Origin: Convolutriloba macropyga
Taxonomy: Eukaryota
Direction of reading: 5' to 3'
Assembly: GCF_964194025.1 (NCBI RefSeq)
Contig: NW_027450919.1
Span: forward strand, 1-50,426
DNA length: 50,426 bases
Shown here: in pieces, positions 1 through 22,608 of the stretch
Layout of the letters: each line of letters starts with the position of its first letter
Position numbering within the stretch: the first letter of the stretch is position 1
Translations under genes and position numbers: made by a program
The notes under the pieces: generated by a model
What the model was told of the DNA's origin: nothing
Seen by the model: only the letters and a program-made list of their open reading frames with translations
Database searches by the model: none

Positions 1-1705
1 CTGTGTAATAAATAAACGTGAATGCCGGCACCAACGAGACGGATCGTCGACTGCGGTCAGCGGTACTATCCTCGTTTATCACTTATTATGAGTAGGGTAG
101 GTACCTAAGTAGGTTGCCTTTTTTTCACCCCCGGGAGAAGCACCAAGGTTGCTATCCTACCTCTACAGTACTAGCCATATATAATTATAGCGACATGCCC
201 GCGATGGTAGTAGCAGGAGGACTCCTGGTAGTAGGGTACTGTACCTACCTACTACCTACGCACGAGTCTCAACAAAAGGATAAGGCCGATATCCGTACAG
301 TACGAGGACCCGGCCTACCCACCTAATAAAAGTAGAGATAGTAGCTGTCCTCAGGACTGTAATAATCAACCTCTCACAGCTCCAAGTAGAGATCAGGGAT
401 AGTTGTTTCAGGATCAGGTTGTTGTGGATAGCGATAGTCGTTTCAGGTCGCGACTCACGACTCGCGGATGCCGATTGCCGTGCTGAGTGGGGCGTGCCTA
501 CGAGAATACAGTACTGCTTGGGCGCTGGCATGCCCGATCTGCCAGCGGGCCGCGAAAGAGATCGGGGCACATGCATGACGTCATACCTACTGTACGAGTA
601 CTGCCTACCTGGTCATACTAGCTCGTACGTATCATACCTAGGGTACCTACCCTACCTGTTTAACCTGTGGCAATTGGTTAGTTAGTCAGCCACATATGGT
701 TTCGATCTGATGGACCACCACTCACCAGCCACAAAGTGACTTCGCGATTAACTATTAAAGTACTAACGGGTGATTACGCCGGGTACGTTATTAACCGTAT
801 CAAAATCAGGGTACACTCTCAAGAATTTAGAATACAAATATATCCGAATAATAAACGCAAATATGCCGGTGGCCACAAAGCATGTTACGTACCACTATAT
901 TATAGCAAAAGATTAAAAAAGAATTAAACAATTTACAAACACCAGTGATCACGATTCACGACCAGAAGTTTATAATTTAGTACTGAAGGCTGTAGGTAGG
1001 TACCTACCCCCTACCCAGCGATACCGACACCCTACATCTATGGACACCCTGCTACGTAGGGTATGAGCAGGAGGAACCTGGAACCTGATATCCTGGTACG
1101 AGTAAGAGTAGGGTCCCTACCTACCTAGAGTACCCAGGTCAAGCTTTGTCTATCTATTGGCCTACCAGTAGAAGCGTACAAATTTGCAGCTATCTACATC
1201 CCCATGTACGAGTACAAATGTGTACGTACTGCCAAATTAATTTATTTACTACCTTCACTCACTCTCCTACACAAAGGAACCCAACCCTACACAAAGTAAG
1301 CAAGGAATCTACCCAGGCAAGGGGCCACTCACGCCTGTACCTATACCCTACCTGCGGCATCAAGATCAAACTGTACACCCGCCCGGCCAGCGGGTACATG
1401 TACGCGTGTGGGACAACAAATGTAACGCGCGTGTCTCCCTAGTCCCTAGTCCCTAGTACTCCCTAGTCCATCTACACTGTACATGTACGTATCGGGAAGG
1501 GTGGGCATGCACATTGCACCGTACACACGGTCATTTATCCCTACCCTACTCATACTAAAAGCCCTCGCCCTCGGCCTCGGCCCCTCTGTAACAATCCACT
1601 CATACTCGTACTCAAAGCCAAATTGGGTCGATGCAATCACAAATCGCATGTTTGGTTTTGTTTTCATACAGTAGGCTCATGGTAGTCTCTGCTGATGAGT
1701 CGGGG

Positions 1706-1710
<5 letters not shown>

Positions 1711-1739
<29 letters not shown>
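1711..1739. repeat. (GT)n microsatellite, representative of many (GT)n/(CT)n/(CCAT)n and poly-C/poly-G tracts in host introns and intergenic DNA
   Basis: Further examples at ~3634, 4856, 6042, 29417, 31127, 37145, 43757, 44668, 46327, 46427, 48512 and 50189. Confidence 0.95.
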
Positions 1740-1741
<2 letters not shown>

Positions 1742-2973
1742 AGTGATTCTTTCCGCCGGGACATGCCATGCCCCGCCGACCATGATGGTCGGTCTAGAAA
1801 ACCCTGCCCCACTGGGATATATCGCTGGATCATATGCACGGAAGATGAATGCCTACTAGTACGCGCACATGTAAGTACGAGTACTGGGCTACCTGCACCG
1901 CGTACATGCATGCACCTACAGGCTACAGCCTACGGTACTCGTCCCTACGGGTAGGGTACCTCCGTGTCCTCCTGCTGAGAGCCTGAGACTACTACGAGTA
2001 TAGGGTAGGTACGAGTAGTAGGTAGGTAGGTACCCTAGCTGCTGCGATACCTATACAATGCTGATATGACATGCACATGTGATGTGTGCGCTGAATACTG
2101 ATCAGCTGATGCCTGCACACCGGATAAAGACGCGGCGTCCGTGTGAGGCCTGATCGGGGCCACCCAGGCCGGGGCCAGGACACGCCCAACAGAGGAGGTA
2201 TGTATGGCTACCCCATGTGGCTAGGGTAGGCAGGGTACGTAGGGGATATCGATCGGGGGTTGCAAGGTCACGGTCACAAGTCTAGACCGTACTTTAATCT
2301 CGACCCTAGTCTAGACTCTAGACCGTACTTGAAGATAAGTAGGTAGTAGGTACCATAGCAGTATCTCACATCCCTCACTCCTTTCCTGTACGAGTATTCT
2401 TATTTAAAAATTACATTCGCGCGGGCCCACCAGAGGGTTCTGGCCCGAGGTAGGGTAGATAGAGTAGCAGTTATCCAAGTCAGCAGCGCGTACGCGCGGC
2501 AGGAGCAAGCGCCGGCGAAGACCGAGTGCATGCCTGCAGTGCATGAGATCGGTTGACTGCCAAGACGCCGCTTCAGCTACACTGACAAAGTTCAACGGCA
2601 CGCGCAGCCCCACCCGTCACTCGACTAAACATTCGCGAGTCTGCTACTGACTCGGCTTCGTCACTTGCCTGGGACCGCCGCCTCTCCGGTCGTCCCTCAG
2701 ACCCGCTGAATCCCACCGTCCCGTTCTCAGGACGGACGCCGCGGCTTCTGACACCCGCCCCCTTCCTCCCCTCCCCTCCCCTCCCCTCCGCTCACAGCGC
2801 CCGGGTTGATCACATACAGCGTATGTCGGTAGTGATTGAAGGCCAGGCACCATGAGGTAGGCGGCTGACGGACTGCCTGACTTGTTGAGAGGAAGGAGGG
2901 ATAGAGACAGACGGACCAACATTCGGACACATAGGATCGCCTCCACATTCCTCTCCTGCAGCAGCCACAACTT

Positions 2974-3105
2974 NNNNNNNNNNNNNNNNNNNNNNNNNNN
3001 NNNNNNNNNNNNNNNNNNNNNNNNNNNNNNNNNNNNNNNNNNNNNNNNNNNNNNNNNNNNNNNNNNNNNNNNNNNNNNNNNNNNNNNNNNNNNNNNNNNN
3101 NNNNN
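2974..3105. other. Assembly gap (132 N)
   Basis: Run of n. It interrupts the 5' coding region of the glycosyltransferase gene. Confidence 0.99.
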
Positions 3106-4853
3106 ATCACTATGATGGCTCAAAACGCGGCTCAGCGGGATCAGGTCGCAACACTATCCTCATGTGTCTTGCGGTCCTTGTGGCGTACCCTTACGGACGA
3201 TACATAGGGTGGCACCTCGCTGGAAGGGGGGTCATCCGCCATGAGGCGACAGTAAAAGTCACAGTCAGCAACAGAGCACTCGGCCCGGCAAAGATGCCCG
3301 CCGGCAAAGATGCCCTGAAGAGCCTGTCAGGGTCAAGCCCAGCAACGCATCTTGAGAATGTGCCGCCTGCTGCTGACCAGCCTGCGGGGCCTGACATCAC
3401 CATCATCGGCTTCACCAACTATGGCATGCTGGACTTTGCCCTCAACTGGCTGTGGCACGTGCGCGAGGCCATCGGGACGGCAGAGATGGAGGAGAGGCTG
3501 CTGATGTATTGCGTGGGCGAGGACACCAAGGCTGCGCTGGTGGCGAGCGGAATGGTCACGCAAGCGATGATCAGGTGAGGGACGGCGGCGTCGAGTCTCG
3601 TGAAAGAGGGAGGGAAGGGGGGAGGGACGGATGCACACACACACACACACACACACACACACCGGGGCGTTAGGCGGGGCATGGGCCCAGGGAGCTCGGG
3701 GGCGGAAGGAGAGTAGGCGGCAGACGGGTTGAGAGGCACAGTGGCGATGAGTTGGCTTCAGTCCCCTCCTCTTCTTTTTTTTGTTTGCTGAATGCCGTCC
3801 CCCGCTTCCCCTTACAGGGACGGGACAATCGGTGCCACCGGCCTTGGCCACGGAGAAGCCAAAGAGGTCTGTCCCAAGTCGCAGCCCCGTCGCCGGACAA
3901 TTTTTTGATCTGCACGCACCAATTGCAACAACACCGAAAAGCGGTCCTGGCCATCCCACTATGCTTCCTCTCATGATGTTGTGCCGCTGTGTCCCGAATT
4001 TCTGAACGGAATTGCCTGCATGCCTCACTGTCCGCACCGGTGGCCGTGGCCTCTCGTCCCCGCAGGGCTTCAAGTACGAGTCCAAGGGCTTCAACAAGCT
4101 GGCGGCCCAGAGGCCTCACATCCTGCTGGCTGCCATCAACGAACGCAAGTCCGTCAGCAGGGCCGTGCTGTACTCCGACATGGACGTGGCGTGGCGGTCC
4201 AACCCTCTGCCGGAGCTGCGCAAGTACCTGGACTCGTACGACGTTGTGGGGCAGAGGGACGACTACCTGATCTGTACGGGGCTGTTCATGTTCAGCACCA
4301 GGTGGGGCGCGTTGGCCGCTGCTTTCACCGGATGTAGAGGGCAGAGATGCCGGGGGCGGTAAGCTGCCGAGACAGACCGGCCGACAGCCTCCCGCACCTG
4401 GGTAAGGTCGGACGTGAGAGGGTCCGGCACAGGCTTGGGGGGGGGAGGGGGCGGTCAGCAGCCAGCTTTGCTGAGGCTTCCTCTGCCTGTGCACAGCAAC
4501 GCCGAGGTGCCGACGCTTCTGACCTCGTGGGCGAAGACCATCGAAAGCGGTGACGTCGTGAACCAATATGAGTTCAACAACATGCTCAAGGTCGCCACCC
4601 CTACCCCTGGCCTGTCCCATCCTGCTGCAGCACACCACAGCGCACTTTCATGGGGGAGCGAAAGGCACCACCCATTCACCCTTCTGCCTCTATCTCTGCA
4701 CCATTCCATTCACGCCAGACCCTGTCTAATAGCCGCCGGCCGTCCGTTCCCGGCTTCTTGGCATGTTTGTCCCGATAAATGTTGCCGGCGTCTGGACAAC
4801 CCCGTGGAGATCCACATAGGCATGGCGTGGCCTGAAAGGAAAAGCTTGGAGGA

Positions 4854-4891
<38 letters not shown>

Positions 4892-6038
4892 TCATGGGTC
4901 TGCCCATCTATCCAGCACCTGACTGCCTGCGAGTCTATATGTCTGCACGCGCTGTCCATCCATCAGTGCCAGTTCCCACATGACAGCCCACCAGAGATTC
5001 TGCCTACCGGTCGGTCCCCAGCCTTGGCTGCGCGGAAGTCCTCAAGGGAGGCCCTTCGGCGTGTTTGTTTCTGCCTGGGCACCTCTGCTTCCGGCAGCCA
5101 AGCTTTGCCTTGGGGGACGGTCAGACGAGACCGAGGAGAGGAGAGGAGAGGAAGGGATGTGGGAGGCTCAGTGCCTCTCTTCCTGTCCCAGGGACCTGTG
5201 CTGACACAGTGTTTTGTTCACCTGCGCTCGGCAGAAGCACCCTTCTATCAGAGTCCAGGGCCTTCCCCACGAGACCTTTCCCTCCGGCCTTGAATTCTTC
5301 CACAAGCACAGGCACGCGACAACCGCCATCACGGTGCACGCCAACTACTTCCAGGGGCAGGTCGCCAAGCGAGACAAGCTGCGGAGCGCGGGCGTGTGGG
5401 AGGACGTCCCTATACCCGGCACCAAGGCTAAAACCATGGCACAGGAAGGAGCGGTTGGGCGGGAGGATGCGGATGACGAGGAGGTTCTAGCCCCTCTGCA
5501 TGCGCCACCCGCTGCCATGGTCACGGCCGGGCCCGACATCACCATCATCGGCTTCACCAACTATGGCATGCTGGACTTTGCCCTCAACTGGCTGTGGCAC
5601 TTACGCGAGGCCATCGGGACGGCAGAGATGGAGGCGAGGCTGCTGATGTATTGCGTGGGTGAGGACACCAAGGCGGCGCTGGTGGCGAGCGGAATGGTCA
5701 CGCAAGCGATGATCAGGTGAGGGACGGCCGGGCCAGCTCTCACACGTGTGCGCCAGCAGGAGCGAGCGAGGGAGGGAGGGTGAGAGAGGGGCACGTGGGA
5801 GAGACCTGTCCAGCGAGGCGCTGCTAAAACTGCTCTGGACCGAACGGTTCTACAGATCATTGGGGCAAGGCTTGCATGTGGAGAAGGGGAATGGGTCTCT
5901 GGTGCTGTTGCCGAGCTGGTGTGGAATGCTGTCTGTGCAGAGATGGCACGATCGGAGGCACGGACCTCGGGCGTGGGGAGGCCACCGAGGTGCGGCGCAC
6001 TGCGTCTTGCTTTCCGCTCTCACGTGCCACTGCCCACT

Positions 6039-6082
<44 letters not shown>

Positions 6083-9037
6083 GCTCTCGCTCTGTTGTTC
6101 CCAAAAGATGTATCCTGTTGAGAGGAAGGGCTTGCCCATCCCTGCTGAGCTGAGGAAGCTATGCTGATTGTGCTCTGCCCCCCCCCCCCCCCCCCCCCGC
6201 GCCTGCGCCTCGGGTCACCACAGGGCTTCCAGTACGAGTCCACGGGCTTCAACAGGCTCGCGGCCCAGAGGCCCCATATCCTGCTGGCTGCTATAGCCGA
6301 ACGCAAGTCCGTCAGCAGGGCCGTGCTGTACTCCGACATGGACGTGGCGTGGCGGTCCAACCCTCTGCCGGATCTGCGCAAGTACCTGGACTCGTACGAC
6401 GTGGTGGGGCAGAGGGACGACTACCTGATCTGTACGGGGCTGTTCATGTTCAGCACCAGGTGGGGCGCGTCGACCTCCCCCCCCCCCCCCCCCTCTTCCC
6501 TAGAGCCTGGCCAGGGTGGGATGCGCTGATGGCGGCAAGGGGCTCCCCTCCCTTCCCTGCGAACTACCTGCCGCAGGGCCCAGTACATGGCTTGAGAGAC
6601 CAAGAACAGAGCAGCAGAGGGGCAGGCCGGTCAGGTTGAAGGGGGTTAGGAGTAATGGCCACCAGACGAGCTCGGCCCGGGGACGAGGGACTGACTGCTG
6701 TGCTTTAACTTGCTGTCCCCCATTCGCTCAGCAACACGGAGGTGCCGGAGCTTCTCAGCGAGTGGGCGAAGATCATTGCGAGCGGATTGGTGGTCAACCA
6801 GTATGAGTTCAACAACATGCTCAAGGTCTCTCCCCCCACCCCCACCCCCACCCTCCCACAGGGATCCTGCCTCCGAATCAGCTCTGCCACCCTGGGATGA
6901 GGCTTTGTGCTACTGGACGTAGCACCAGCTGCGAGGACCCGAATTTCCCGCAAGGGCTATTTCGCACAGAGGCCGAGCGATGGGGGGAGGGGAAGCGAGG
7001 GCCAGTGCCAGGGGCAGCGCTCCATCACGTCCTCGCTCATGCCAGCGCCCGGCCCTGGTAGACGTGGGCAGCTGAGGACCTGATACCATCACCCAACCGT
7101 CCCAGCCCGTCCCCACAAACCGGCGGCTCCTCCCAGCGAGCGCACGTGCAAGCGCAGTGTCCTTTCTAGAGAGGTTGGGGCCGCACTGACGCCCCCTCCC
7201 TCCCTTTGCCCATGGCTCTGTGCGCTGCAGAAGCACCCTTCCATCCGGGTCCAGGGCCTCCCACACGAGACCTTCCCCTCCGGCCTGGAGTTCTTCCACA
7301 AGCAGAAGCACGCCAGCACCGCCCTGACGGTGCACGCCAACTATTTCCAGGGGCAGAAGGCCAAGCGTGAGAAGCTGAGGAGCGCCGGGCTGTGGAAGGA
7401 CATCCCGATCCCAAGCAAGGAAGACGCGGTCGCCGCGGTCCCTCTGCAGCACGTGGCACCTGTCAGGGGCCCGCCTGGGGGGCCCGACATCACCATCATC
7501 GGCTTCACCAACTACGGCATGCTGGACTTTGCCCTCAACTGGCTGTGGCACGTGCGCGAGGCCATTGGGCCAGCAGAGATGGAGGCGAGGCTGCTGATGT
7601 ATTGTGTGGGCGACAACACCAGGGCCGCGCTGCTGGCGAGCGGAATGGTCACGCAAGACATGATCAGGTGAGGCCCAGCCGTGTGCTTCTGTGTTCACCC
7701 AACATTTTGTCGCTGCCATGTTGTACTTCTGCCGTCATGTGATGCTTCTGGTGGATGAAACTCTGACTGCGGTGGTGGCGGCGCTTTGCCCTGTGTTTCC
7801 TGGACCCCCGCAGGGATGGAACAGTGGGAGGGACTGATCTCGGACATGGAGAGGCTAACGAGGTCCGCCGCGCTTCACATTCCTCGATCAGTATCGCAGT
7901 CCCGTGTTTCTGATTTGCGCATTGTGTAGTGTCTGACGCCCTTCTGAGCTGCGTGGAAAACCCTCACCGGCCCCGACGCCTGCCCCCCTTGGCTGCTGCC
8001 TTGCCACTCGTCCCCGCAGGGCTTCAAGTACGAGTCCAAGGGCTTCAACAAGCTCGCGGCCCAGAGGCCTCACATCCTGCTGGCTGCCATCAACGAACGC
8101 AAGTCCGTCAGCAGGGCCGTGCTGTACTCCGACATGGACGTGGCGTGGCGGTCCAACCCTCTGCCGGATCTGCGCAAGTACCTGGATTCGTACGACGTGG
8201 TGGGGCAGAGGGACGACTACCTGATCTGTACGGGGCTGTTCATGTTCAGCACCAGGTGGGGCGCTCAGGTTTCATTGCACCGAATCCGCGCCAGCGTTTT
8301 TGTGGCATTCAAAGGGAGACCAAGGAGAGGGGTCTTGGTGGGGCACAGCTAATGCATGTCGGCAGGGGCTCGACTGTGTAGGGGCAGGGGACGCGAGGAG
8401 AGAAAGGGGCCAGCGGAAAGGCAGAGGGACCCTTTGGGCAGGTGAAGTCAAAAGGGCGGATTTCGCACCGGCGGGGGAGGGTGGGACGGCATGCCCTTGC
8501 CTACTATGTTGACTCTCATGACTCACTCCTTTGCCCTCCTCTGTCGCTCAGCAACGCCGAGGTGCCGGTGCTTCTCAGCGAATGGGCAGAGATCATCTCG
8601 AGCGGAACGGTGGTCAACCAGTACGAATTCAACAACATGCTCAAGGTGCGTCGCTCTCCCCTTTCATGCCTGCCTGGCCCTTTTGGCCAGTCCCTGCTAC
8701 GGCGGCATGAGGCCCCGTCTACCCGCTTCGCTGTGCCACCCAGCATCCCCCACTGTCAGCCTGTCCCCTCATAGATCCACACACCGGGTAGCGCCCGCGA
8801 GATACTGACTTGAGAACTGCCTCGCTGCCACGACTCGGCGCTCTGCAGAAGCACCCTTCCATCCGGGTCCAGGGCCTCCCGCACGAGACCTTCCCCTCCG
8901 GCCTGGAGTTCTTCCACAAGCAGAAGCACACCGACACGGCGCTGACGGTGCACGCCAACTACTTCCAGGGGCAGAAGGCCAAGCGTGAGAAGCTGCAGAG
9001 CGCCGGGCTGTGGAAGGATATCGCTATCACAGCCTAG
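3106..9037 (+). CDS. Triple-domain nucleotide-diphospho-sugar transferase (GT77 / Nucleotid_trans-like glycosyltransferase), type II membrane protein, multi-exon
   Basis: Phase-consistent GT-AG exons: <3106-3574, 3818-3866, 4066-4301, 4497-4590, 5235-5716, 5941-5989, 6224-6459, 6732-6825, 7231-7667, 7814-7862, 8020-8255, 8552-8645, 8849-9037 (TAG). Each of the three units has IIGFTNYGMLDFALNWL, the DxD motif LYSDMDVAW, ICTGLFMF, NQYEFN, FPSG and VHANY...K..KL.SAGLW, which is the GT77 motif order. An N-terminal hydrophobic anchor TILMCLAVLVAYPYG is present. The frame is open into the gap; a possible start mini-exon ATGAG|gtagg lies at 2852. Confidence 0.88.
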
Positions 9038-11091
9038 CCACCGTTGGCTGTTTCCTGCATTACACGATACGGTAGACCGTTTCCCAACTAGCAATAGCCC
9101 TCCTTCCCCCCCCCCCCCCCCCCCCCCATTGTCTCTTTCCCTCTGCTGTTACAGTCCAACCCTGCGCTCAACCAAAGGCCTGGAAGGTGGACTGCTCGGC
9201 CTTAGCCATGACAGAGCCACGTCATGGCATGGCACGCACAGCTACAGGACAGAATAATGTCAGCCAAGTTTATTCATCATGTGAATCGGGAATCTGCCGC
9301 GTCCGATCGCTGCCAACCCTCAGCGGAGGTTTTAGGGGGGTGATTATTTTTTAAGATATATTGATAGCAAGCGTCGCTTCCAAGGGCAGCCACTTATCGC
9401 GCAAAAACCCACCAGGAAGGATTCGCGCACCGCGAGGGAAACAGTCGTGCACCATCTTGTCCTGTCCTGTCCTGTCCTGTCCTGGCCTGTGCTGTGCTAC
9501 AGAGAGAGGGCATGGCGAGAGTGCTGAACAGGACGGGATGGCTGTTGCCATGGCCAGTAACCAAGACGTGCTATGAAATTTGTGCTCAGAGGCACTGACA
9601 ATACACTCGCCGAGACCAAGCCACCTCGTGCATGTCTGCCCTGAACGTCATATATTGCGGCCGCTGCGTGCATTTCTGTCCGATTTCGCCGCCGCTGGGG
9701 AGCTGTACCGTGTCTGTAGCAGCATCCTGCCATTTCCGGGCAGCTGAGGCCTGGTGACCAATTCCACACGGACCCATTTCATCCTCATGGTAGGTGAGAG
9801 AGACAGCAGATTAAAATTCAAGGGTCCCAGAGAGCTGCAGTGGCGGTTTCAACGCAAGATCTGAGTCCATGGTAGCCCCGCACGCCAGGGGGAGTCCTGG
9901 CCGGTTGGAAAGCTCCCATTGTATACCAGGCAGGGTGGCAGGTTCTGGCAGCTTCCCCACTCTGTCCCCTCCCCTGGACACGTCCTTGGTCCCTGACCTG
10001 TTCCGTGCCGGTTGTTCCCCCCCCCCCCCCCCCCCCGCCTTTGCTCGCCATATGAGATTCGTCGATGTAGTGCGATTCACTGTCCGGTGGCCGGTAGGGT
10101 ACTCGTGGAACTGGGTAGGTGCAACACCTGGGGCCTCCGGCGCAATGTGCAACCGCACCTGGCGGACTGGCCGACTGTACGCGAGTGTACATTCACTGAT
10201 GTATCCAGCTAAATTTTTTAAATTACACAGCATGCCTTCTCATGTACCGTGTACGGCATGTGTACAGTGTATAACCCGCGTACCGCGCCGGGATCTTACA
10301 AAAGTATCCGTATCCGGGGAAACTGCAGCACTGGCCTCCCCAGCGGCCAGCGCGTAATAAGTCCTTTAGTAGCTAGTAGTAGTAAATGGTAGAGCTACAG
10401 TACTCGTAGAACGAGCGATGGCTATACCCAACGGCCAACGCGTGGCACCGGACGGTCGACTAGCGATACCTCGAGTGCTCTCCCGAACAGCTTGGTGTCG
10501 GAGAGTTCGTTTCGCGAATGTGGAAAGTTAGACCGCGTGCAGCTAGATCCTATCCCTACAGAACAGCGTAAATAGCAGTTCTTTCTCCATTCCTCCATCC
10601 CCAGGCAGTCCTGCGAGCCTCCACCAGCGCGGTGGCGACTGGCCCCAACTCGATAGGAGTACACCATGGTGAGCTCATATCGCCATGCCATGTATCACCG
10701 TGCAGTGTGATAACATGTCCTCTTGGTATACTAGCTAGCTGGGTGCCTCAGTCACAGTTTCCGCCACTCGAGGTCGCGCACGAGTCCAAGATTGACCGTT
10801 TCAGAGCCTCGTGCACGAGCCTACAATTATACAGATATCGCGAACCGGTGCCTTGAGAGGACGGGGTTAGTTAGGGTTGGTGAACTTTGTGCTTCTGGAT
10901 GTTCCGTGACCGGCGTACGGGGGGCCCGGGTCCGTGCATGGCGTACGCGTTGTGCAAATCCAGTGCAAGCTGCCGGTCGACGGACCACTGGCGTCCTCCC
11001 TGTGACTTGCTGACAACTCCCGCCGCTGACCCGTGTGAACATTCAGGGACGACGATCCGACGCGGGTCACACCTGGGATCCGACTGAGTTT

Positions 11092-13677: not shown

Positions 13678-14651
13678 ACACTGGTGCCCCTGTACCATAC
13701 ACAAACTATGCGCACGGCGAGGAGAGGTCCTACATGCTCTCTGCCTCAAGACGATCTCTGTACCATGCCCACACTTCACCACCGCGCAAAATTGAATCCC
13801 AGAAAGAATTTGTGTATCAGTAGTAGCACATGTCAAAAGCAGCACAGTCTTAGAGCACGTGCTGCGATTCTAAGAAATGCAAGAGGATTGCCGTCTTAAG
13901 AATTACAGATAGAGTGTCCTTCCCTCAGGCTCCACCGCCAGTCTGGTGTGCAATCCAATTGCCCTGCAGTGGAGTGCGTGGGCTAAAGGGGGGAAGACGC
14001 GGGGGCACGAAAACAGTTCACAGACTCAAGCTGAGCACCTTGAGCCCAGCACTCCAGGAGGGCACGTAAGTTCTGGGAGGGCGAGCCGCTGGCAATTTGG
14101 CTCCGCCATTTGAGGAGCAGTGTGGCGGCGCCCAGCAGCATTACACCTCCACCTTTCATTTTCACTGCCCGACCTGTATTGCATGCGACTCCATGGGGTT
14201 TCCCCAGTACCTCCCTCCCTGCCTCCCGTTCAGCAGATCAGCACACCGCCCAGGGGGTACGTCCCCCTGCCCGCCGCCAGGCCCTTCGCTTCTCTTGTCT
14301 CCCCATCAGCCCAGCTGTCTGCCCCTCTGACATCCGACTCCTCGCAACTCAGCGGGGCCGACCGAGCCAGCAAGGCATGCATTCCAGCACATGCGCAACG
14401 AAACTAGGCAAGGACGAGTTGGGCCCACATTCCTCCTTCTCGCCTCTAAGGAGAGGCGTTGTGTCCTGCGCCTTCTTGGTGCAGGACACAACATGTTTAC
14501 CCACCGGAGTCCCATAGCGCCTACATGAAGGGTGATCTCCCATCCAGTGCAGGTCTGTGACGGCGGACCCATGCTCCGCAATGGAGCGGTGGACGCCACG
14601 GCACGGCAACTCTGCCTGCGAGTGCAGGTGTCCTGTGATAACAATTATGAA

Positions 14652-14656
14652 TTACA
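14652..14656 (-). promoter_or_regulatory. Candidate TGTAA polyadenylation signal of the dehydrogenase gene
   Basis: TTACA on + (TGTAA on -) about 200 nt downstream of the stop codon. TGTAA is the established chlorophyte poly(A) signal. Similar motifs follow the transposase (22104) and the zinc-finger cargo gene (25673). Confidence 0.35.
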
Positions 14657-14849
14657 GCCATGTATTCATTGTGGTGTAACGAAAATCCTAAACTTGTCTA
14701 GTCTGTATCGGTCTGGAGCCACTGGGAGCCACCGCATGCTGTGCTGCTCCACAACTCCTGAGTCAGAGCTTGGCGTTGCAGCGAGCTCTGTTTCTTAGGC
14801 CAACCGCAATTTTTTCGCGGCGAGAGCTGCCAGTGCCCCGCCTTGGCAC

Positions 14850-16379
14850 TCACGCTGTCTCCTCGTACGTGAAGATTCCCCCGTACTCTGCGCGCACAGC
14901 ATTCAACACGTCTGGCCGGTCCTTGACAATGACCTTCTTGCCGGCTTTGGCAATGATAGAGGCAACCACAAGCTTTTGTGACTCCTCGATGATTGGCACA
15001 GAGCACGGCTCCTTGAAGGTTACAGTCTCAAACTCGTACGATTTCCTGTCCTCTGCCAGCAGCTGCTCTGCCTGGAGCTGGGCATGCACTTCGTTGCTCG
15101 CGTCAGTTGCACGTGAGAGTAGAGGAGGGACACCGATTGACTCGGCGTAGCCAGCGAGGGCGCGGTTGTCACGTGGGAAGCATGGGCCTCCGAATCCCCA
15201 GCCTGGCATGAGACACTTGGTGCCTACTCGGGAGTCGTGGCCGACTGCCCGGAGAATCTCATCTGCATTTGCGCCTGGGGTCTTGGCAGCAATGTCACCA
15301 ATGGTGTTGGCATACGCGATCTTCATTGTAACATAGCAGTTGATAGAGATCTTGCAGATCTCAGCACTGGACGGGGCCATGCGCTGAATGCTTGGCTTGT
15401 TGTCACAGATATTGTGGTACATAGCTTCAAGGGCGTCACCGGCCTCGGTGCTGCCCTCACCAATGAGTACGATGTCAGGATTCAGAAAGCCTTTCACGAT
15501 AGCGCCCTGGGCAATAAACTCGGGATTATATGACAGAGTGCAGTTGGTGGTGTCCCTGATAAGGTGGAGGCCAATGTCGCGGATATAGCCGGGCAGAACG
15601 GTGCAGCAAATGACGATGTGCTTGTTGGCCACCTTGGCGCTGTTGATCTGCGTCAGCACTCGGCCGAGCTTAGTTACGTCGTAGTGGCGCTTGCCACCGG
15701 TAGAGGGGGTGTCGACCAGGAGGAAGATGAAATCCGAGTGCTCGAGGGCCGCGTCAAAGTCGCAGGTGGCCCACAGGTTCTCGGCCTTGGATAGCATCTC
15801 CTCGACGTGCGGCTCGGAGCTCTTGAGGGTTCGATCGTTGATGGCTTCCACATAGTCCGGAAAGATATCCACTCCAAGGACATTGTACCCGGCCTTTTCG
15901 AAGCAGAGAGCGGTGACCAGACCAAGACGTCCAATGCCAATGATGCTAACGTTCTGCTTGTCGCCATTAAACGCGAAGGCGTGTCGCCTCAAGCCGCCGC
16001 TAGGGGACGGCAGAGTCTCGACGGGCGCCAAGTTAGGACGGGCCGCGAAGCTCGTGCTCCCGGCTGTGTTGTTTCCGTGGACAATGTTCGCCATGGATGC
16101 GACTACTCGTGCACAGATAGGGTGGATAGGACCGCGCCCGCGTGCCAAAGCAAGATCACCTAGGGTTCCTGCGTTACAAGCGGGGACAACCAACAGGGTC
16201 AACACCAGGCACGTTGCGGCAAGGCCTCCAGATAGAGACAGAGCACCATTGGAGACAGGTATTTTCAGTACGGAATATTTGGATTGACGGCATTGACGGT
16301 CTCCGCACCTCGAGCCTTGCAGGAAAGTCAGGGCTTGGAGGACATGCTGTCGCGGTTGTTGACGGGTTTCCATGGCCAT
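14850..16379 (-). CDS. UGD: UDP-glucose/GDP-mannose 6-dehydrogenase family protein, intronless
   Basis: Rossmann motif SIIGIGRLG..ALCF..AGYNVLGVD, plus LLVDTPS, CTVLPG, SYNPEFIAQG, SAEICKISIN and the catalytic GFGGPCFPRD. The start may be 16379 or the internal ATG at 16094 (MANIVHG). Substrate specificity is not established. Confidence 0.93.
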   Translation of the reverse strand: MAMETRQQPRQHVLQALTFLQGSRCGDRQCRQSKYSVLKIPVSNGALSLSGGLAATCLVLTLLVVPACNAGTLGDLALARGRGPIHPICARVVASMANIVHGNNTAGSTSFAARPNLAPVETLPSPSGGLRRHAFAFNGDKQNVSIIGIGRLGLVTALCFEKAGYNVLGVDIFPDYVEAINDRTLKSSEPHVEEMLSKAENLWATCDFDAALEHSDFIFLLVDTPSTGGKRHYDVTKLGRVLTQINSAKVANKHIVICCTVLPGYIRDIGLHLIRDTTNCTLSYNPEFIAQGAIVKGFLNPDIVLIGEGSTEAGDALEAMYHNICDNKPSIQRMAPSSAEICKISINCYVTMKIAYANTIGDIAAKTPGANADEILRAVGHDSRVGTKCLMPGWGFGGPCFPRDNRALAGYAESIGVPPLLSRATDASNEVHAQLQAEQLLAEDRKSYEFETVTFKEPCSVPIIEESQKLVVASIIAKAGKKVIVKDRPDVLNAVRAEYGGIFTYEETA

Positions 16380-17454
16380 GCATGCTCGTTTGTACTAGTA
16401 CTCGAAAATGAGAATGGTCGCACCCCAGCCGGCCGGGCCGGCAATCGACCGTCCGGGGCGCGGTGAGTCGGTGACCTCCATATTATGTCGTGTAGGGTAC
16501 AGACCGTACAGTGCTCCTACAGTACCAGTACTACAGCTTGCTCCTTCCTCCTGCTCCTACGAGCGTCGAGCACCCAGCTACTGGTATACCAGGAGCTCGT
16601 ACATAGATGTGTGCATGAGGATTGTTACTGTGGGGCCGAGGCCGAGGGGGCGGCCTAAGAAATTGCTAAAGGGTAGTACAGTACTAGTACAACCTTCTAC
16701 CTCCTGCTTCTACTCGCACAATAAAAAGTAGTATTTACAAAGGAGCCATGGCCTACGGGGCTCAAACCGCTCAATGCTAGACTAATAATGCCGCAAATCC
16801 ATCCAGGTTGGAAAACCACAACTGCAGAAACTCATTTACAAGAAAAGATTCTGTTCCTATTTATTTTGAAATCCGAATATTTGTGACAGAAAGGGATATA
16901 TTAAGAGTATAAATGAGAGATTATTATTCATTGGGGATTCACTCCCATGACAGTTTTTTGATTCTCAACAGGCACCCTACCCTACTACGAGTACGGGTAT
17001 AGAGATAGTGACAATATTTATTTCGATCTACATTGTACGCGGCCTCACGGCGTACGGAGCGTACGTGTCCGCACGTACCAGATCGCAGGGCGCCAGAGCC
17101 GGGGCCCCATGGGCGCCTGTGTAGAGATATGCCTGGAGAGCCTGTAGGCCGTACCTGTACCCTAAAGCTAGGTAGGGCCTTTTACCAGGAGGACCTGGCC
17201 TTATCTGCTCCGTTACATCTTTGTTGTACGAGTACATGCGAGGATATGATCCTCCTGATACGTACTCGTACGGGTACGCAGTACGCATTACAATTATATT
17301 GTTAAAGAATCCACGGTATTTAAATAATACATACACTGCAGTACAATACTCAATAGAGTATGTATCGACTATCCAGTCGGGAGTCGGTACCTACCCTACA
17401 GTACCCTACGTTTACAATCAGGGGCGCGGGCCCGCGGCCCAGGCATGCATTTAC

Positions 17455-17672
17455 GGATGTGGGGCAAAACAGGTGGGTTTGTGTACCGCTCCCACCACTT
17501 TTGCCCCCCTTTCGTTCGAATGAATCGTACTTCATATACATATTGTATGTAAACAAATACAACAGTGTAACTTCATATACTGTAAACAAGTACAACAACG
17601 TTCCCTGTCCATTTTCGAATTTTTGAAGGAGTGGCAGTCGCAGGCCGCAGTCTCGGCCCACGACTAAGTCGA
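17455..17672 (+). repeat. Left terminal inverted repeat (218 bp)
   Basis: Reverse complement of 29029-29246. No mismatch found by eye; pairing breaks at 17454/29247 and 17673/29028. Confidence 0.95.
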
Positions 17673-17844
17673 CGCGAAGCCATCATGCGGCAAGTCGTGA
17701 GAAGCAATCCACTTCAGTCGGCATAGGCAGTGCATCCCCTTCGAAAAACTTCGATTTCATCGGAACCTATGTATTGAGCGTTGCCGCGGTTATCAAGCTT
17801 TCGGCAGCTCGGCTGTTAGTACCGGACTTAAAGAAGTACCTAAC

Positions 17845-20800
17845 ATGGTAACGGCGAGAGTTAGAGCTGGCAACACTGCCTTATCGCGACATTTGCGCAA
17901 GCAAAGACGTGCCGGCCAGAAGCGGCGGAGTCAATCGACCCATTATTCGGATGGCGAGTCTGAGGATGGAAGTATAGATCGTGATTCGCCTGTCTTTGTG
18001 CCTTGCGGCGATAGTGAGCCGGACGAACCCGCTGCGTGCGATCATTGCACCTCCTTCGGGCCGGGCTCCGCAGTAGCGGTAGCATTGCCCATATCGGAGA
18101 GGCTGCAGCCCGCAGAGCGGAAATTGGTTTACGTCTCTCCGGATAAACACGAGGGCCATTTTCTCGTGGCAGCCCATAAGACGACACGGTATCATACGAG
18201 CCCACGCGAATTCGTTTTCGTGGGGTTCAGATTCGTACAGTGCCGAGGGGAAACGGTGTTGGTGGGGTGGTGTAGCGCTGATAGAGACTGTTCGGAGAGA
18301 TCATATCGAAGGGAGATGTTCCCTGAGATGGACTTTCCACACATGGATCCGGCAGAGATAGCGGAAGAAAGCCGGCTATGCCCGTGTGCTGCGAGGCTGC
18401 TGAGGAGCATGGGGGGTCCAGAAAGCTTGGAAGTCAAGCTTGTGATGGATGCGGTGGAAGCTCGGGAGCAATGGGAGGACAGTGAAGCGCTGATCGGACA
18501 TTGGGAGCTGCAACGCAAGCAATACTGCTGCATCAACCCGAGAGATCAAGCTGGCAGCGTGTTTGGCCAGTGGGGAGTGGTGAGGCAGGTCAAAGACGGT
18601 TTCCTCTGCACTATGTGTCAAGGAACCCCTAGGCACTGCATGCACACCCAGGTGCTCATGAACGCGGACAGCGGTCTACGAACTCCTATAGCTATGCCCC
18701 CAGAGGAGATGGATAGAAGGATCAAACGTGCATTGGACCCGTGCACTGGAAGGTTCCGTGTTGGCACTGTCTCTAAGTTCCCTCTCCCATTCTTCCCAGA
18801 GGATGACCCCGAAGTCCTACGAAAGCTCAAGGGTAGGTGGCTAGCACACCGAATGCACAGCGCCTGACATGGAGAGCACGGCATTTTTGTCAAACCACGG
18901 CTGAAAGGTGTTCTGCTATGTTGCATAGAGTTTGCAGAAGGACAGCGCCTACCTCCAAGACTCGCGCCTTCTCATTGGCCAGGATGTGAGACAGACGGTT
19001 GCTGTCGTTGTACCAACCCCTTGGAGAGAACGCAAGAGATGACGGTGTACTCAACATGTGGCAAGCAGGTGATTTCATACACCACACTTGTGTGCAGTGA
19101 GTGTGGCCATGAGATGGGAGTGGATGGTCTGCAACATGGGATCCTCATCCTCAGACGTGACGTAAGTGCAACATGCTGCCCTGTATTATGCCTGCATATA
19201 CCTGTAGTATGTCTGCTCATACCTGTCCTACATGCCGTTTATGTCCGGTTCTAGTACTTGTAGTATGTTTTAGCGTACTTATCTGACCTGCAGTGTGCTT
19301 CTGAACATCATACTTGTATTATGATAAAGCATACCTATCCTGACTGAAGCATATGTTTGTCTGTCATACTTGTAGTATGCTCTGCATTCTTATCTTACAC
19401 CCTGTAGCACCTGTCTATTTATCATACTTGTAGTATGTTTTGGATGCTTGTTCTCGCTGCTGTATTTGGGGTCTCGAATACTTCACAGCATACGTTTCGT
19501 CCGAGTGTGCAACATGTGTATGGAATTGATATTTCTAGTATGTCGACCTCCGATTAATGCAGATTGCCTTCTCCCATGAGCTTCTTTATCGATGGCAGTT
19601 CCATTTTGCCGTAAATGATGGCGGCTATTACTCGTATTGGAGAGGGGTGTTGGCCGGGTAAGTGGGCTTCCACTGATGTCGTGCTTACATCCCGAGTTAT
19701 GCTTGCCATTTGAGCAAGCGATTGTTACTTTGCATTGTATATATTCTCCTTAGAAATTGGCAATTGTGCAGTTACACTTGGCCAACGGGCACCACCCATT
19801 TGGAGCTGCGAAGGGAATTCGAGCGTACAAGAAAGTCCTTCACAGATGCAGTTAAAGCCTTCATCAGACTGCAAAGCCTACCGTACGGCGAGATCTTCCG
19901 TTGCAATTGCCAGGTAGGTACTAATCTAAGTGGTTACGGCATGACTCGTAGCAGAGGTGCTCAAACACGGTGAAGTATGCACAGACATATTTGGAATCTA
20001 ATCGATCGGGGTGCTCTGTATTATTAGACTTGAGATATGCATAGGCGTACTTACGTAAACTATCAATTACTGTACTTGTGATACCCCTGTACATACGAAT
20101 TCCACAGGGAGGGGTTCCCCAAAAAGTTCAAGCAGACGGAGTCTCACTCTCCATCAGAAAGTCGGCATGCTCGCTACAGCGCCCCTACTTGCCAAGCAAG
20201 TCGGATATCCTTTGTACTTCCACAGGTATGTATTGGCATATTACCTGCTTGTTGAAGACCCATTGTGTTTTGGGGGTTGACGGTTCATGGTTTGAGGTAT
20301 GCGAACGGTCGCAGGCTCAGCCTTCACAGACAGAGTCTTCATCGCCAACAAGACCTTGAGGAAGGAATTGATAGGGTGTTTTGAAGCGCACACAAGCTCT
20401 GGCGGCAGGGTGCGGGCAGGCGTCGTCCCAGACGCCGACACAATGAGCAGCTTGAAGCGATCGCTACTCTTGGATGAAAACGGGTGTGAGTCCCTGTGGC
20501 CCATCGTGCAGACAGCGTTTGGAGATGCCCCACCCGGCTCTGTGGTCCGGCACGTCTACATGGAGATCATACGGACACTGGCGACGAACGCTCCGGTTTG
20601 TCACCTCGTAAAGCCACATCTCTTCGAGATTGTTGACAACTTGATACATGGGGGGGAGCCATCCTTCCCCGATCTCGACAAGATTCACGTGCACAGCCCC
20701 GCTCTGCTGCGATTCATCAAAGGTGCTGGAGGTGCCGGCCATGGCCTGGATATTAACGTCCGACACCTTCTACGCGCCATGAGATACCGAGCTGAGGCTG

Positions 20801-22093
20801 CCTATGATGTCGGGGCAACTGACACTGAGGTATGTGTTTACATATTTCATTGCTACTCTGCGTCTCTGACTCCAAGTATCTCTTGACATAACTTTGCTCG
20901 AGATGCTCTCGTGTCACAACATATATCCTTCGGAATATCATACTATAGGTATCTCTTAACATATCTTGAATACTCCTGTCCTGTGATATGAGCAGACATA
21001 CTTCTCATCCAACTACAGTGTAGCAGGACTTTACGAATGGAATTAATTCCTGGCAGATTCCTGTGATATGAGCAGACATACTTCACATCCAACTACAGTG
21101 TAGCAGGACTTACCGAATGGAATTCCTGGCAGATACCTGAAGGCATGCGGAAAGCGGCGGAGGAGCATGGGGTTCAACGCCTTTCTGACCCTACCGGATG
21201 GTCCGAGGACGAAGCCTTCCTTCGAATGGGATTGTTCGGTGGTTTTGCTTCGACGCCCTACCAGCCGTCAGAGCTCGGCGGGAGCCACATCATCCGGCAA
21301 GTTCCTAGGTATGAAGCAGACGCCAAATCGGAAGAGAAAGGTTGCACCAAGCACAAGACCGCAAGTTCCAGTCATACCCCAGGTATAGTTTTGCGTATCA
21401 CCCCCTATGATACAGTGAACCATATTTCAAGTGTCAATTGATGTATTTCCCTGAGGTTGCAACGATCGTATGCAGGCATTATCGCCCACTGGTGCCTAGA
21501 CTGCAATATGTGCGTGGCTTGTGCCATGATGTCGGAATGCGAGAGCTCAAGGACCCTTTTCGACATGCTCTTTGCAATGTATCCCAATCCTCCTACCCTT
21601 GTGAGCTACGATAATGGGTAAGTATCGTATCCATATATCGTGTCTGCCGCCGCTCCCTTCCTTCCTGTGAGTTCGGCATCGTATCAGCATGTTTAATTCG
21701 TTCATATTACACATGCTCGCCAGGTGTAACCTGCATCAGTATATCCTAAATCGAGAACCCGCACATTTCAAGATGACGGAGATCGTGATTGACGAGTTCC
21801 ACGCGAAGAGCCACAAAGATTGTAGTATTAACTATAATTCTGGAGAGTTTAGATCGCGAGCTCGAAATTTCTCTCTGTGTGAGCAAAAGAATCGAGGCCT
21901 TGCGGCCATGGCGACCAACTTTTCGCACATGGATCAAATTTCTTTCTTAGAGTTATGCCGCTACAAACTCGCGGCTATTAACCTTTACCAGAAGGAGCGC
22001 AACTCCGTCTCTCACAAAGTCTTCTGGCGGCCTGCCATGCTCAATCTTCGCGAGTTCGAGGAGGGGTACGGCAGCTCTGGCGAGGAGGACTGA
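17845..22093 (+). CDS. KDZ-type DDE transposase with SWIM-like and CxC cysteine clusters, 9 exons, ~950 aa
   Basis: Exons 17845-18832, 18929-19161, 19563-19657, 19772-19913, 20108-20225, 20315-20829, 21133-21382, 21476-21617, 21724-22093 are all GT-AG and phase-consistent; they sum to 2853 nt with no internal stop. Motifs: CTMC..PRHCMH (SWIM-like), CCRC...VCSECGH..G.DG..HGIL, FRCNC..KVQADGVSL (first Asp), CTKH..HTPGIIAHWC, ESSRTLFD, VSYDNGCNL (second Asp), VIDEFHAKSHKDC, NFSLCEQKNRGL (Glu). This order is typical of KDZ transposases. Confidence 0.87.
20980..21134 (+). repeat. Tandem duplication (~80 bp x2) in transposase intron 6, duplicating the 3' splice site
   Basis: CTGTGATATGAGCAGACATACTTC(T/A)CATCCAACTACAGTGTAGCAGGACTT...TTCCTGGCAGAT occurs at ~20981 and ~21061. 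Confidence 0.9.
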
Positions 22094-22608
22094 TGCGCGA
22101 CGGTGTAAATATGACATTTGCCATATCTGAAATATGCATAACCATATCTGAAGGGCTTTTGTGTTACAGCTGAACTAATAGCCTCCTTGATCTCTTGTGA
22201 GTTGTGAGATCGCATGTTTTTAAGTGTTTGAAGTATGTCAATACGTACATTCCTGTTGGTGCACATCGATCCTGGCAACTAGCTATACTACACTGTGTAT
22301 AGCTAATCTACGGTGGGTATGGACAACCATACTTCAATTATGAATTCAGCTCTTTGGCGATAATATATACATCGTGTCGATAATAACATCTGAACTTGTC
22401 CTTGCTGTTAATAATGGTCGACATGTGGTTCTCTTGGTCGACTGTACCGTCAAGGTATGACATACCATATTACGCACGTGCGCGGGGCCTAGACGACAGG
22501 ACTGTATGTATCCATGGTATGTGCAGCCGTATCATGTGCAATCATTTATGCCCATTGTGCCCATTGTTGAAGTATATATATGTAGTGACATATTTATGAT
22601 ATCAAATT

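Follow-up and report, generated by a model that had tools for sequence, protein, structure and literature searches.

Background

To our knowledge, the excision footprints described so far are rare, scattered lesions at single loci that were seen in experiments. The footprint of Sleeping Beauty is C(A/T)G plus TA, and the scar of Minos, whose ends begin with CGAG, consists of four end bases plus TA. Tc1/mariner elements duplicate a TA target, and on their excision the end bases of the element are kept between two TAs after end joining (PMC2874221); Minos leaves a footprint of 6 bp (PMC10992017). Here we describe a contig of 50,426 nucleotides from the Convolutriloba macropyga assembly GCF_964194025.1 (NW_027450919.1, positions 1 to 50,426 of the forward strand; hereafter the window, meaning this whole stretch), in which parts of the intergenic DNA, termed carpets, are filled with TA dinucleotides chained through short recurring spacers. 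The commonest word of these carpets, TA-CGAG-TA, is proposed, with a probability of about 0.58, to be the excision scar of a miniature inverted-repeat transposable element (MITE), with the carpets as the place where cut-and-paste transposons with a TA target land.

The 6-bp footprint of Minos has the same size as CGAG plus TA. Unlike the known Tc1/mariner footprints, the octamer described here occurs at about 0.7 per kb in the sampled genome, is the dominant word with a 4-nt spacer, is stacked in chains and is found in two species. Footprints themselves are known, and no description was found of scar accumulation as a dominant, stacked intergenic word common to two species. Literature searches for the octamer or for the sequence of the Minos scar returned only the 6-bp size of the footprint.

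Origin of the contig

The source assembly is AT-rich and comprises 1.18 Gb in 4694 contigs. The window, which is the whole of one contig (C1823), has a GC content of 58% compared to 31-42% in sampled large contigs. Its dehydrogenase protein is 91% identical to a protein from a marine-protist transcriptome, and the next named relatives are algae. SBP-domain genes form a family of green plants and algae, and the SBP-domain loci detected in the assembly (at least six) all lie on small contigs with window-like GC content and the same short words. Judged by the GC contrast, the relatives of the dehydrogenase and the restriction of SBP genes to such contigs, the window is DNA of a green-algal cobiont and not of the assembled animal. 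The genes that the preliminary description had called host genes are therefore to be reassigned to the alga, and features of a cobiont contig inside an animal assembly should not be taken as host biology. Fourteen other small contigs with 50-61% GC (C1000, C222, C2566, C2605, C244, C3903, C3925, C2921, C1814, C4205, C1304, C895, C3060 and C3973) derive, like the window, from the green-algal cobiont and not from the host. About one-tenth of the sampled small contigs are of this type.

TA chains and their spacers

The carpets of the window, the transposon that interrupts one of them, and the chains and words discussed below are as follows.

1-2550: carpet A, intergenic DNA dense in TA and rich in GC, 5' of the + strand gene near 2851; extends to the contig end
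10101-10850: carpet B, weak, lying between two + strand genes
16401-17454: left half of carpet C, on the 5' side of the dehydrogenase gene
17455-29246: transposon of 11.8 kb inserted in carpet C and not part of the carpet
29247-30250: right half of carpet C, preceding a + strand gene whose start lies near 30.2 kb
1990-2037: example chain of 12 TAs, with two TA-CGAG-TA words and a 17-bp local duplication
593-600, + strand: TACGAGTA word, putative MITE excision scar, in the context G-word-C
1097-1104, + strand: TACGAGTA word
1207-1214, + strand: TACGAGTA word, in the context G-word-C
1603-1610, - strand: TACGAGTA word, reading TACTCGTA on the + strand
1876-1883, + strand: TACGAGTA word, in the context G-word-C
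1993-2000, + strand: TACGAGTA word inside the example chain
2010-2017, + strand: TACGAGTA word inside the example chain
2389-2396, + strand: TACGAGTA word
30003-30023, + strand: array (TACGAG)x3.5, which places GTAC every 6 bp

The example chain reads exactly as the preliminary description gave it. It is the longest chain in 60-2400, its 12 TAs comparing with a mean of 6.9 in 300 dinucleotide-preserving shuffles of that interval, from which the chain expectations were taken. With gaps of 0-4 nt allowed, chains of at least four TAs hold 104 TAs against 48.0 +/- 10.6 expected (z 5.3), and chains of at least six hold 57 against 12.2 +/- 7.7 (z 5.8); gaps of 2, 3 and 4 nt between TAs occur at about twice the number expected from the shuffles. 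The TA odds ratio is 1.3-1.5 in all carpet segments (1-2550, 10101-10850, 16401-17454 and 29247-30250), and the first three kilobases have 1.45, 1.48 and 1.28; in gene bodies it is 0.3-0.75.

The spacer spectrum goes beyond what dinucleotide composition explains. The spacer CGAG/CTCG was observed 18 times against 0.4 expected, CCC/GGG 20 times against 2.2, CC/GG 32 times against 7.9, CG 13 times against 3.3 and CAG/CTG 10 times against 1.9. A single C or G, which had been listed beside these five classes, shows no enrichment (30 against 28). The octamer TACGAGTA/TACTCGTA has 18 copies in the 5.8 kb of carpet and none in 39 kb of other sequence, a comparison that leaves out the AT-rich 19101-24700 inside the transposon, where one octamer lies at 19629.

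Density of these words varies among the carpets. Carpet A has 9.3 TA per 100 bp, and each of its kilobases holds on average 27.8 vocabulary words and 18.8 GTAC; the left and right halves of carpet C have 9.4 and 9.6 TA per 100 bp, with 14.2 and 33.9 words per kb, respectively. Carpet B has 6.8 TA per 100 bp, yet only 2.7 words per kb, and the recurrence reported at 10367-10410 is accordingly a weak site. The recurrences reported at 16390-17410 and 29450-30070 are one intergenic region that has been split by the 11.8-kb transposon. The near-absence of words from gene bodies and introns was borne out, with 0.47 words per kb in the intron-rich gene body at 2851-9200 and 0.50 per kb in 30251-50426.

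A transposon family with CGAG ends

A scan for TA-flanked inverted ends found an element of 570 bp inside a carpet on another algal contig (L027, 8072-8645). Its inverted end matches at 26 of 29 positions, TA stands on both sides and the ends read CGAGGCTGGGAGG... The element belongs to a family of roughly 560 bp with ends CGAG...CTCG, full-length copies of which are 65-77% identical on several algal contigs. Similarity between copies stops exactly at the flanking TAs. Pattern searches that printed the flanks found TA in front of all 27 of the 27 MITE ends on algal contigs, while two chance matches on host chromosomes were not preceded by TA; the end pairs found were all about 576 bp apart. 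The end bases of this family are the outlier among the 4-nt spacers, CGAG/CTCG, and the chance of such a match is about 1 in 136.

Target preference agrees as well. The base before the TA of the MITE is G in 67% (18 of 27), C in 22%, A in 7% and T in 4%, and the base before the word is G in 68%, C in 17%, A in 9% and T in 6% (n=137). The carpet baseline before TA is G 41%, C 27%, A 20% and T 13%, from which the word departs as well as the MITE (p=0.009 for the MITE). In 4 of the 27 MITE flanks, CTCG or CGAG stands directly before the TA.

The family resembles Stowaway-like MITEs in its length of about 560 bp, its 29-nt inverted end, its TA flanks (27/27) and its many diverged copies, as well as in its insertion in gene-proximal, TA-dense DNA. 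It differs in its end, CGAGGCTGGGAGG..., which is unlike the plant Stowaway consensus. The element may be called Stowaway-like, the superfamily being assigned from the TA duplication alone. Two further families with terminal inverted repeats (TIRs) are TA-flanked, those with CACTAYTGAGC ends in 4 of 4 and those with CACCCCTCCAC ends in 6 of 6 independent copies.

Both of these TIR families are also found arrayed in tandem over long stretches, with repeat periods near 1352 and 2685 bp, in what look like satellites built from transposon copies. Such arrays were found at the following places.

C1201, 404-8543: TIR-family tandem array
C2400, 5874-19593: TIR-family tandem array
C492, 30433-47914: TIR-family tandem array

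Distribution in the algal genome and in a related species

The TA-word grammar is a genome-wide trait of the alga. A sample covering 17 algal loci and 200,571 bases contains 137 TACGAGTA words (chance about 6) and 61 copies of GTACGAGTAC (chance about 0.4), and segments set by [GC]TA[GC] density alone cover 18.9% of it. Among the 4-nt spacers of this sample CGAG/CTCG is counted 137 times and the runner-up 12 times, and GTAC makes up 14% of all TAs.

Genes were located by a codon-usage scan trained on 17 long algal open reading frames (ORFs), and the gene calls are crude. By these calls, and in a small set of junctions (n = 6 and 8), word density is 5.2 per kb where genes diverge and 1.1 per kb where they converge; coding segments are almost without words. 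About one quarter of the TACGAGTA words in 200 kb are not faced by any predicted 5' end, so the statement that the grammar recurs only 5' of genes was too strong; carpets lie mostly, but not exclusively, upstream.

A contig from a related species (L002) carries a dehydrogenase with 73% protein identity to that of the window and has no DNA that can be aligned outside the coding sequence. Over 20.7 kb it contains 16 TACGAGTA words, and several of these immediately precede the orthologous dehydrogenase gene. The CGAG and CAG classes are shared with the window; the CC/CCC classes are not.

A perfect 16-bp palindrome, GTACTCGTACGAGTAC, with three GTAC cores 6 bp apart, is present in the two species.

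L002, 10027-10048, 10105-10126 and 16092-16113: GTACTCGTACGAGTAC palindrome
L011, 4721-4742: GTACTCGTACGAGTAC palindrome

Proposed mechanism and the evidence from repeat copies and haplotypes

In the proposed mechanism, carpets, which lie mostly upstream of genes, would receive cut-and-paste transposons that insert at TA. One of these, the Stowaway-like MITE of about 560 bp, would duplicate the TA and insert at G-TA-C. On its excision the break would be rejoined as TA plus CGAG (or CTCG) plus TA, comparable to the 6-bp footprint of Minos. The product would be GTAC-GA-GTAC or GTAC-TC-GTAC, in which one preferred target has become two, 6 bp apart, and scars would consequently tend to stack. Such target doubling would yield the GTAC excess, GTACGAGTAC, the (TACGAG)n runs and near-equal numbers of direct and inverted pairs; the neighbouring CGAG-class words are direct in 9 cases and inverted in 6. 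In a vegetatively haploid alga there would be no homologue from which the element could be restored, so that each jump would leave a scar at flat copy number and scars could far outnumber copies. The self-feeding process suggested in the preliminary description has support from the preference of the MITE for a G in front of its TA and from the doubling of one GTAC into two by every such scar.

Direct evidence for the predicted scar comes from an alignment (A1) of an unrelated repeat in three paralogous copies: where two of them have C-TA-GG, the third has C-TA-CTCG-TA-GG, a derived 6-bp CTCGTA insertion at TA in exactly the form predicted for the scar. Within carpet B, two haplotypes differ by indels of 71 bp, 21 bp, 2 bp (TA) and 2 bp (CT). 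The TA-only indel lies beside a TACTCGTA word, and TAGTAGTA and TACTCGTA are exchanged at the same length in the carpet. These differences are suggestive of activity in carpets. Among the substitutions between the haplotypes, transversions outnumber transitions (13 to 18 overall; 8 to 5 within the carpet), and of the 5 transitions among the 13 carpet B substitutions, 3 are C>T or G>A. As such, the haplotype differences are mixed and not of the C>T type, but neither are they clean indels of spacer plus TA. Exact-protein look-ups for more haplotype sequence gave no new carpet and one fold-back contig, and contigs in four DNA runs were identical to the window and therefore carried no allelic information.

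Several observations weigh against reading the word as a scar. The repeat alignment is the single direct comparison of empty and scarred sites and comes from paralogues rather than alleles; no allele pair with the MITE on one side and the scar on the other was found, and the search for the empty site of the L027 copy gave no match. Among the carpet B differences of the two haplotypes there was no clean CGAG-plus-TA indel. With 137 words and 3 copies or part copies of the MITE in 200 kb, there are about 50 words per copy. Words are near-absent from introns, for which the footprint explanation needs an additional target bias or selection. The 220 kb searched yielded no element with ends of the CC, CCC or CAG type. 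In addition, CAC/GTG spacers show no enrichment (16), although two TIR families have CAC ends. Finally, vocabulary units account for 292 of the 2341 bases of 60-2400 (12.5%).

Most of the 137 words per 200 kb probably arose as MITE scars, and the CG and CAG/CTG units may be scars of the same or of other TA-targeting families. A TA-targeting family with matching ends exists for CGAG (27 of 27 TA-flanked) and was found in 220 kb for none of CC, CCC and CAG; a local search for TA-flanked elements with CC, CCC or CAG ends gave only noise beyond the CGAG family (control 8 against 9), and no family emerged from TACAGT contexts. Units of the CC/GG, CCC/GGG and single C/G types are more numerous than the CGAG class, and no donor element for them was seen in 220 kb. 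The footprint interpretation offered earlier for the chains thus holds up for the commonest word, TA-CGAG-TA, is plausible for some other words and is unproven for the bulk of the chain units. Its wider form, in which intergenic DNA as a whole was written by footprints, was not borne out, since 292 of 2341 bases make this at most a minor fraction by length, with units at about 12% and the CC/GG, CCC/GGG and C/G classes without donors. It is doubtful that all TA-centred carpet units, which by area take up about one-fifth of the algal genome sampled, are scars stacked by several TA-targeting families that repeatedly land in GTAC/CTAC sites made by their earlier scars. In that case promoter-proximal DNA of this algal lineage would in measurable part be written by transposition, and the GTAC arrays may later have been co-opted as sites for plant-type SBP factors.

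If the commonest octamer is a scar, transposition history could be read from k-mer counts, as events rather than as surviving copies. Furthermore, transposons would add sequence to promoters even after leaving them, in a process that feeds itself by making two GTAC targets from one. This would provide a concrete and testable source for lineage-specific promoter composition in green algae.

Alternative explanations

It is unlikely, though still a viable alternative, that the words are selected cis-regulatory elements, in the form of arrays of GTAC cores, to which plant-type SBP-domain factors bind, and of CCTACC-like motifs with a putative likeness to MYB sites, which would mark the promoters of this algal lineage, and that the likeness of the words to the MITE end arose by chance. 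Words gather upstream of genes (5.2 per kb at divergent against 1.1 per kb at convergent junctions) and are near-absent from gene bodies and introns, an absence that keeps this explanation alive; GTAC-type words also stand upstream of the dehydrogenase gene in the related species, and vocabulary words are found upstream of a gene within the transposon. At least six SBP-domain loci are present on algal contigs of the same composition, and GTACGAGTAC with its 61 copies lies far above any one-mismatch neighbour (at most 17). SBP-box elements such as the copper-response elements of Chlamydomonas share with the carpets a GTAC core, a promoter location and the presence of SBP genes. The algal words differ from them in having no flanking consensus, in being denser than any regulon and in abutting and sharing bases. 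Bases around GTAC are flat, with no preference of the CCGTAC or GTACGG type, and the words favour neither orientation with respect to the gene (48 to 46). Moreover, chained words share TAs instead of forming spaced sites, one word arose as a 6-bp insertion within a repeat copy, and the top spacer is the MITE end, with which the target preference also agrees.

An origin by cryptic simplicity, through slippage and small local duplications of 4-6-bp units (TACC, TACCC, TACG and TACGAG) and with no part played by transposons, is likewise improbable. Its marks are present: the arrays (GGTA)x7 at 2004-2032, (TACG)x4.8 at 29478-29496 and (TACGAG)x3.5 at 30003-30023, a 17-bp duplication at 1993-2028 (period 17, 2.1 copies in Tandem Repeats Finder, TRF), and direct neighbours with the same spacer at 3-4 times the expected number. 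Like cryptically simple DNA, the carpets reuse short units in scrambled order in non-coding sequence, with some short tandem arrays. They differ in that inverted arrangements are as common as direct ones and in that one unit is tied to a transposon end. TRF arrays (2-7 copies) cover only a small part of the carpets, and 12-mers occur in many permutations without a long consensus. Inverted neighbours (GG then CC 3.2 times, CGAG then CTCG 2.4 times) are about as strongly enriched as direct ones, and slippage cannot be the source of the inverted pairs. Nor can it explain the more than tenfold lead of one 4-nt spacer, the identity of that spacer with the MITE end or its sharing with a distant species. 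Pure slippage, which had been named as an alternative from the start, therefore fails, and it may well explain part of the CC/CCC classes.

Decay of longer dispersed repeats, for example of solo long terminal repeats with GTAC arrays, is a very improbable source of the carpets. Short dispersed pieces are indeed contained in them (an element of about 40 nt and retroposon tails), but no vocabulary 16-mer recurs. A whole-assembly search with 60-2550 found only the element of about 40 nt elsewhere, and on that result a long dispersed repeat was rejected.

Repeat-induced point mutation (RIP) or a methylation-driven change of CpA to TpA in GC-rich intergenic DNA can be dismissed as a source of the TA excess, even though the classical RIP indices point to it in the carpets (TA/AT 1.3-1.55, (CA+TG)/(AC+GT) 0.76-0.96; high TpA/ApT and a low second ratio being the likeness to fungal RIP) and the example chain has no CA or TG, because the gain in TA (about 7 per 100 bp) far exceeds the loss of CA+TG (about 2-3 per 100 bp), CAC/GTG is depleted no more than GCC or CGC, the carpets retain 47-55% GC and are neither AT-rich nor duplicated but single-copy, only 5 of the 13 carpet B substitutions are transitions (3 of them C>T or G>A), leaving no C>T bias, the source is a green alga and not a fungus, and exact 8-10-mers that recur 60-137 times do not arise by point mutation of unrelated DNA.

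Genes, the inserted transposon and minor repeats

Two of the genes that border the carpets described above are as follows.

2851-9100, + strand: multi-exon gene downstream of carpet A; ends approximate
14850-16094, - strand: single-exon gene of the UDP-glucose/GDP-mannose dehydrogenase family (Pfam PF03721, PF00984)

The first gene has an ATG at 2851 followed by GT, and the codon-usage scan places its + strand exons from 3270 to 9034. These exons are repeated three to four times with 76-98% DNA identity (e.g. 4049-4312, 6207-6470 and 8003-8264), and the product, without a Pfam match, is by its sequence a recently expanded repeat protein. The dehydrogenase starts near 16094, where the transcript of a related alga aligns from its ATG with 82% identity. 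Exons on the - strand span 34 to 49 kb in the same scan, and no carpet lies at the convergent junction near 33-34 kb. Within the - strand coding signal, 41053-41842 is a long imperfect tandem array of a C-rich unit of about 24 bp (CGCCTGTCCCCGACCGCCTGTCCCCAGA-like). A Pfam search on 20 ORFs of the window gave the dehydrogenase as the sole clear match and one faint match to NRDE-2 far below the cut-off. No known RNA families were found in the window, and none of the RNA runs contained the stretch, so they gave no evidence on transcription starts.

The transposon in carpet C ends in identical 218-bp inverted copies at 17455-17672 and 29029-29246. It contains an AT-rich spacer (23940-24430), upstream of the gene at 24622, with the words TAGGGTACCTAGGTACC, TGGTACCTACTAC and GCTACCTACC. 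The transposon region folds back in a metagenome contig (L039; ENA ERZ25071359 ctg32120, 58039-79064), in which window 14622-25740 is followed by 25728-17448 reversed and then by a different flank. This represents either a second, rearranged insertion or an assembly chimera.

Short dispersed pieces and palindromes were also found in and around the carpets.

118-150, - strand: retroposon tail fragment, with poly-T on the + strand and then CACCCCCGGGAGAAG; same sequence as the insertion in haplotype L001
1560-1606, 16622-16660 (reverse) and L030 6080-6135: dispersed element of about 40 nt, CCTCGGCCTCGGCCCCTCTGTAACAA-like, holding TGTAA
205-230 and 29526-29550 in the window, L032 9517-9545, L036 4995 and L034 1293: CCAGGAG/CTCCTGG palindromes

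Near window position 10185, haplotype L001 carries a retroposon tail of 57 bp with poly(A), flanked by a target duplication of 14 bp; the haplotype of the window is without it. The 16-mers of this tail occur in 6 of the 17 sampled algal loci, and their depth is raised in metagenome contigs. At 1560-1606, the copy of the element of about 40 nt has a summed contig depth of 109-497 compared to 0-10 in neighbouring bins, the depth elsewhere on the stretch being at most about 50, and nine short matches to it lie on other algal contigs, many of which carry the element; TGTAA is the polyadenylation signal of green algae. The hairpin-like palindromes, CCAGGAG-(2-6 nt)-CTCCTGG, recur in carpets, often adjoining TA, and could represent either an element whose ends were joined by internal deletion or a further class of word.

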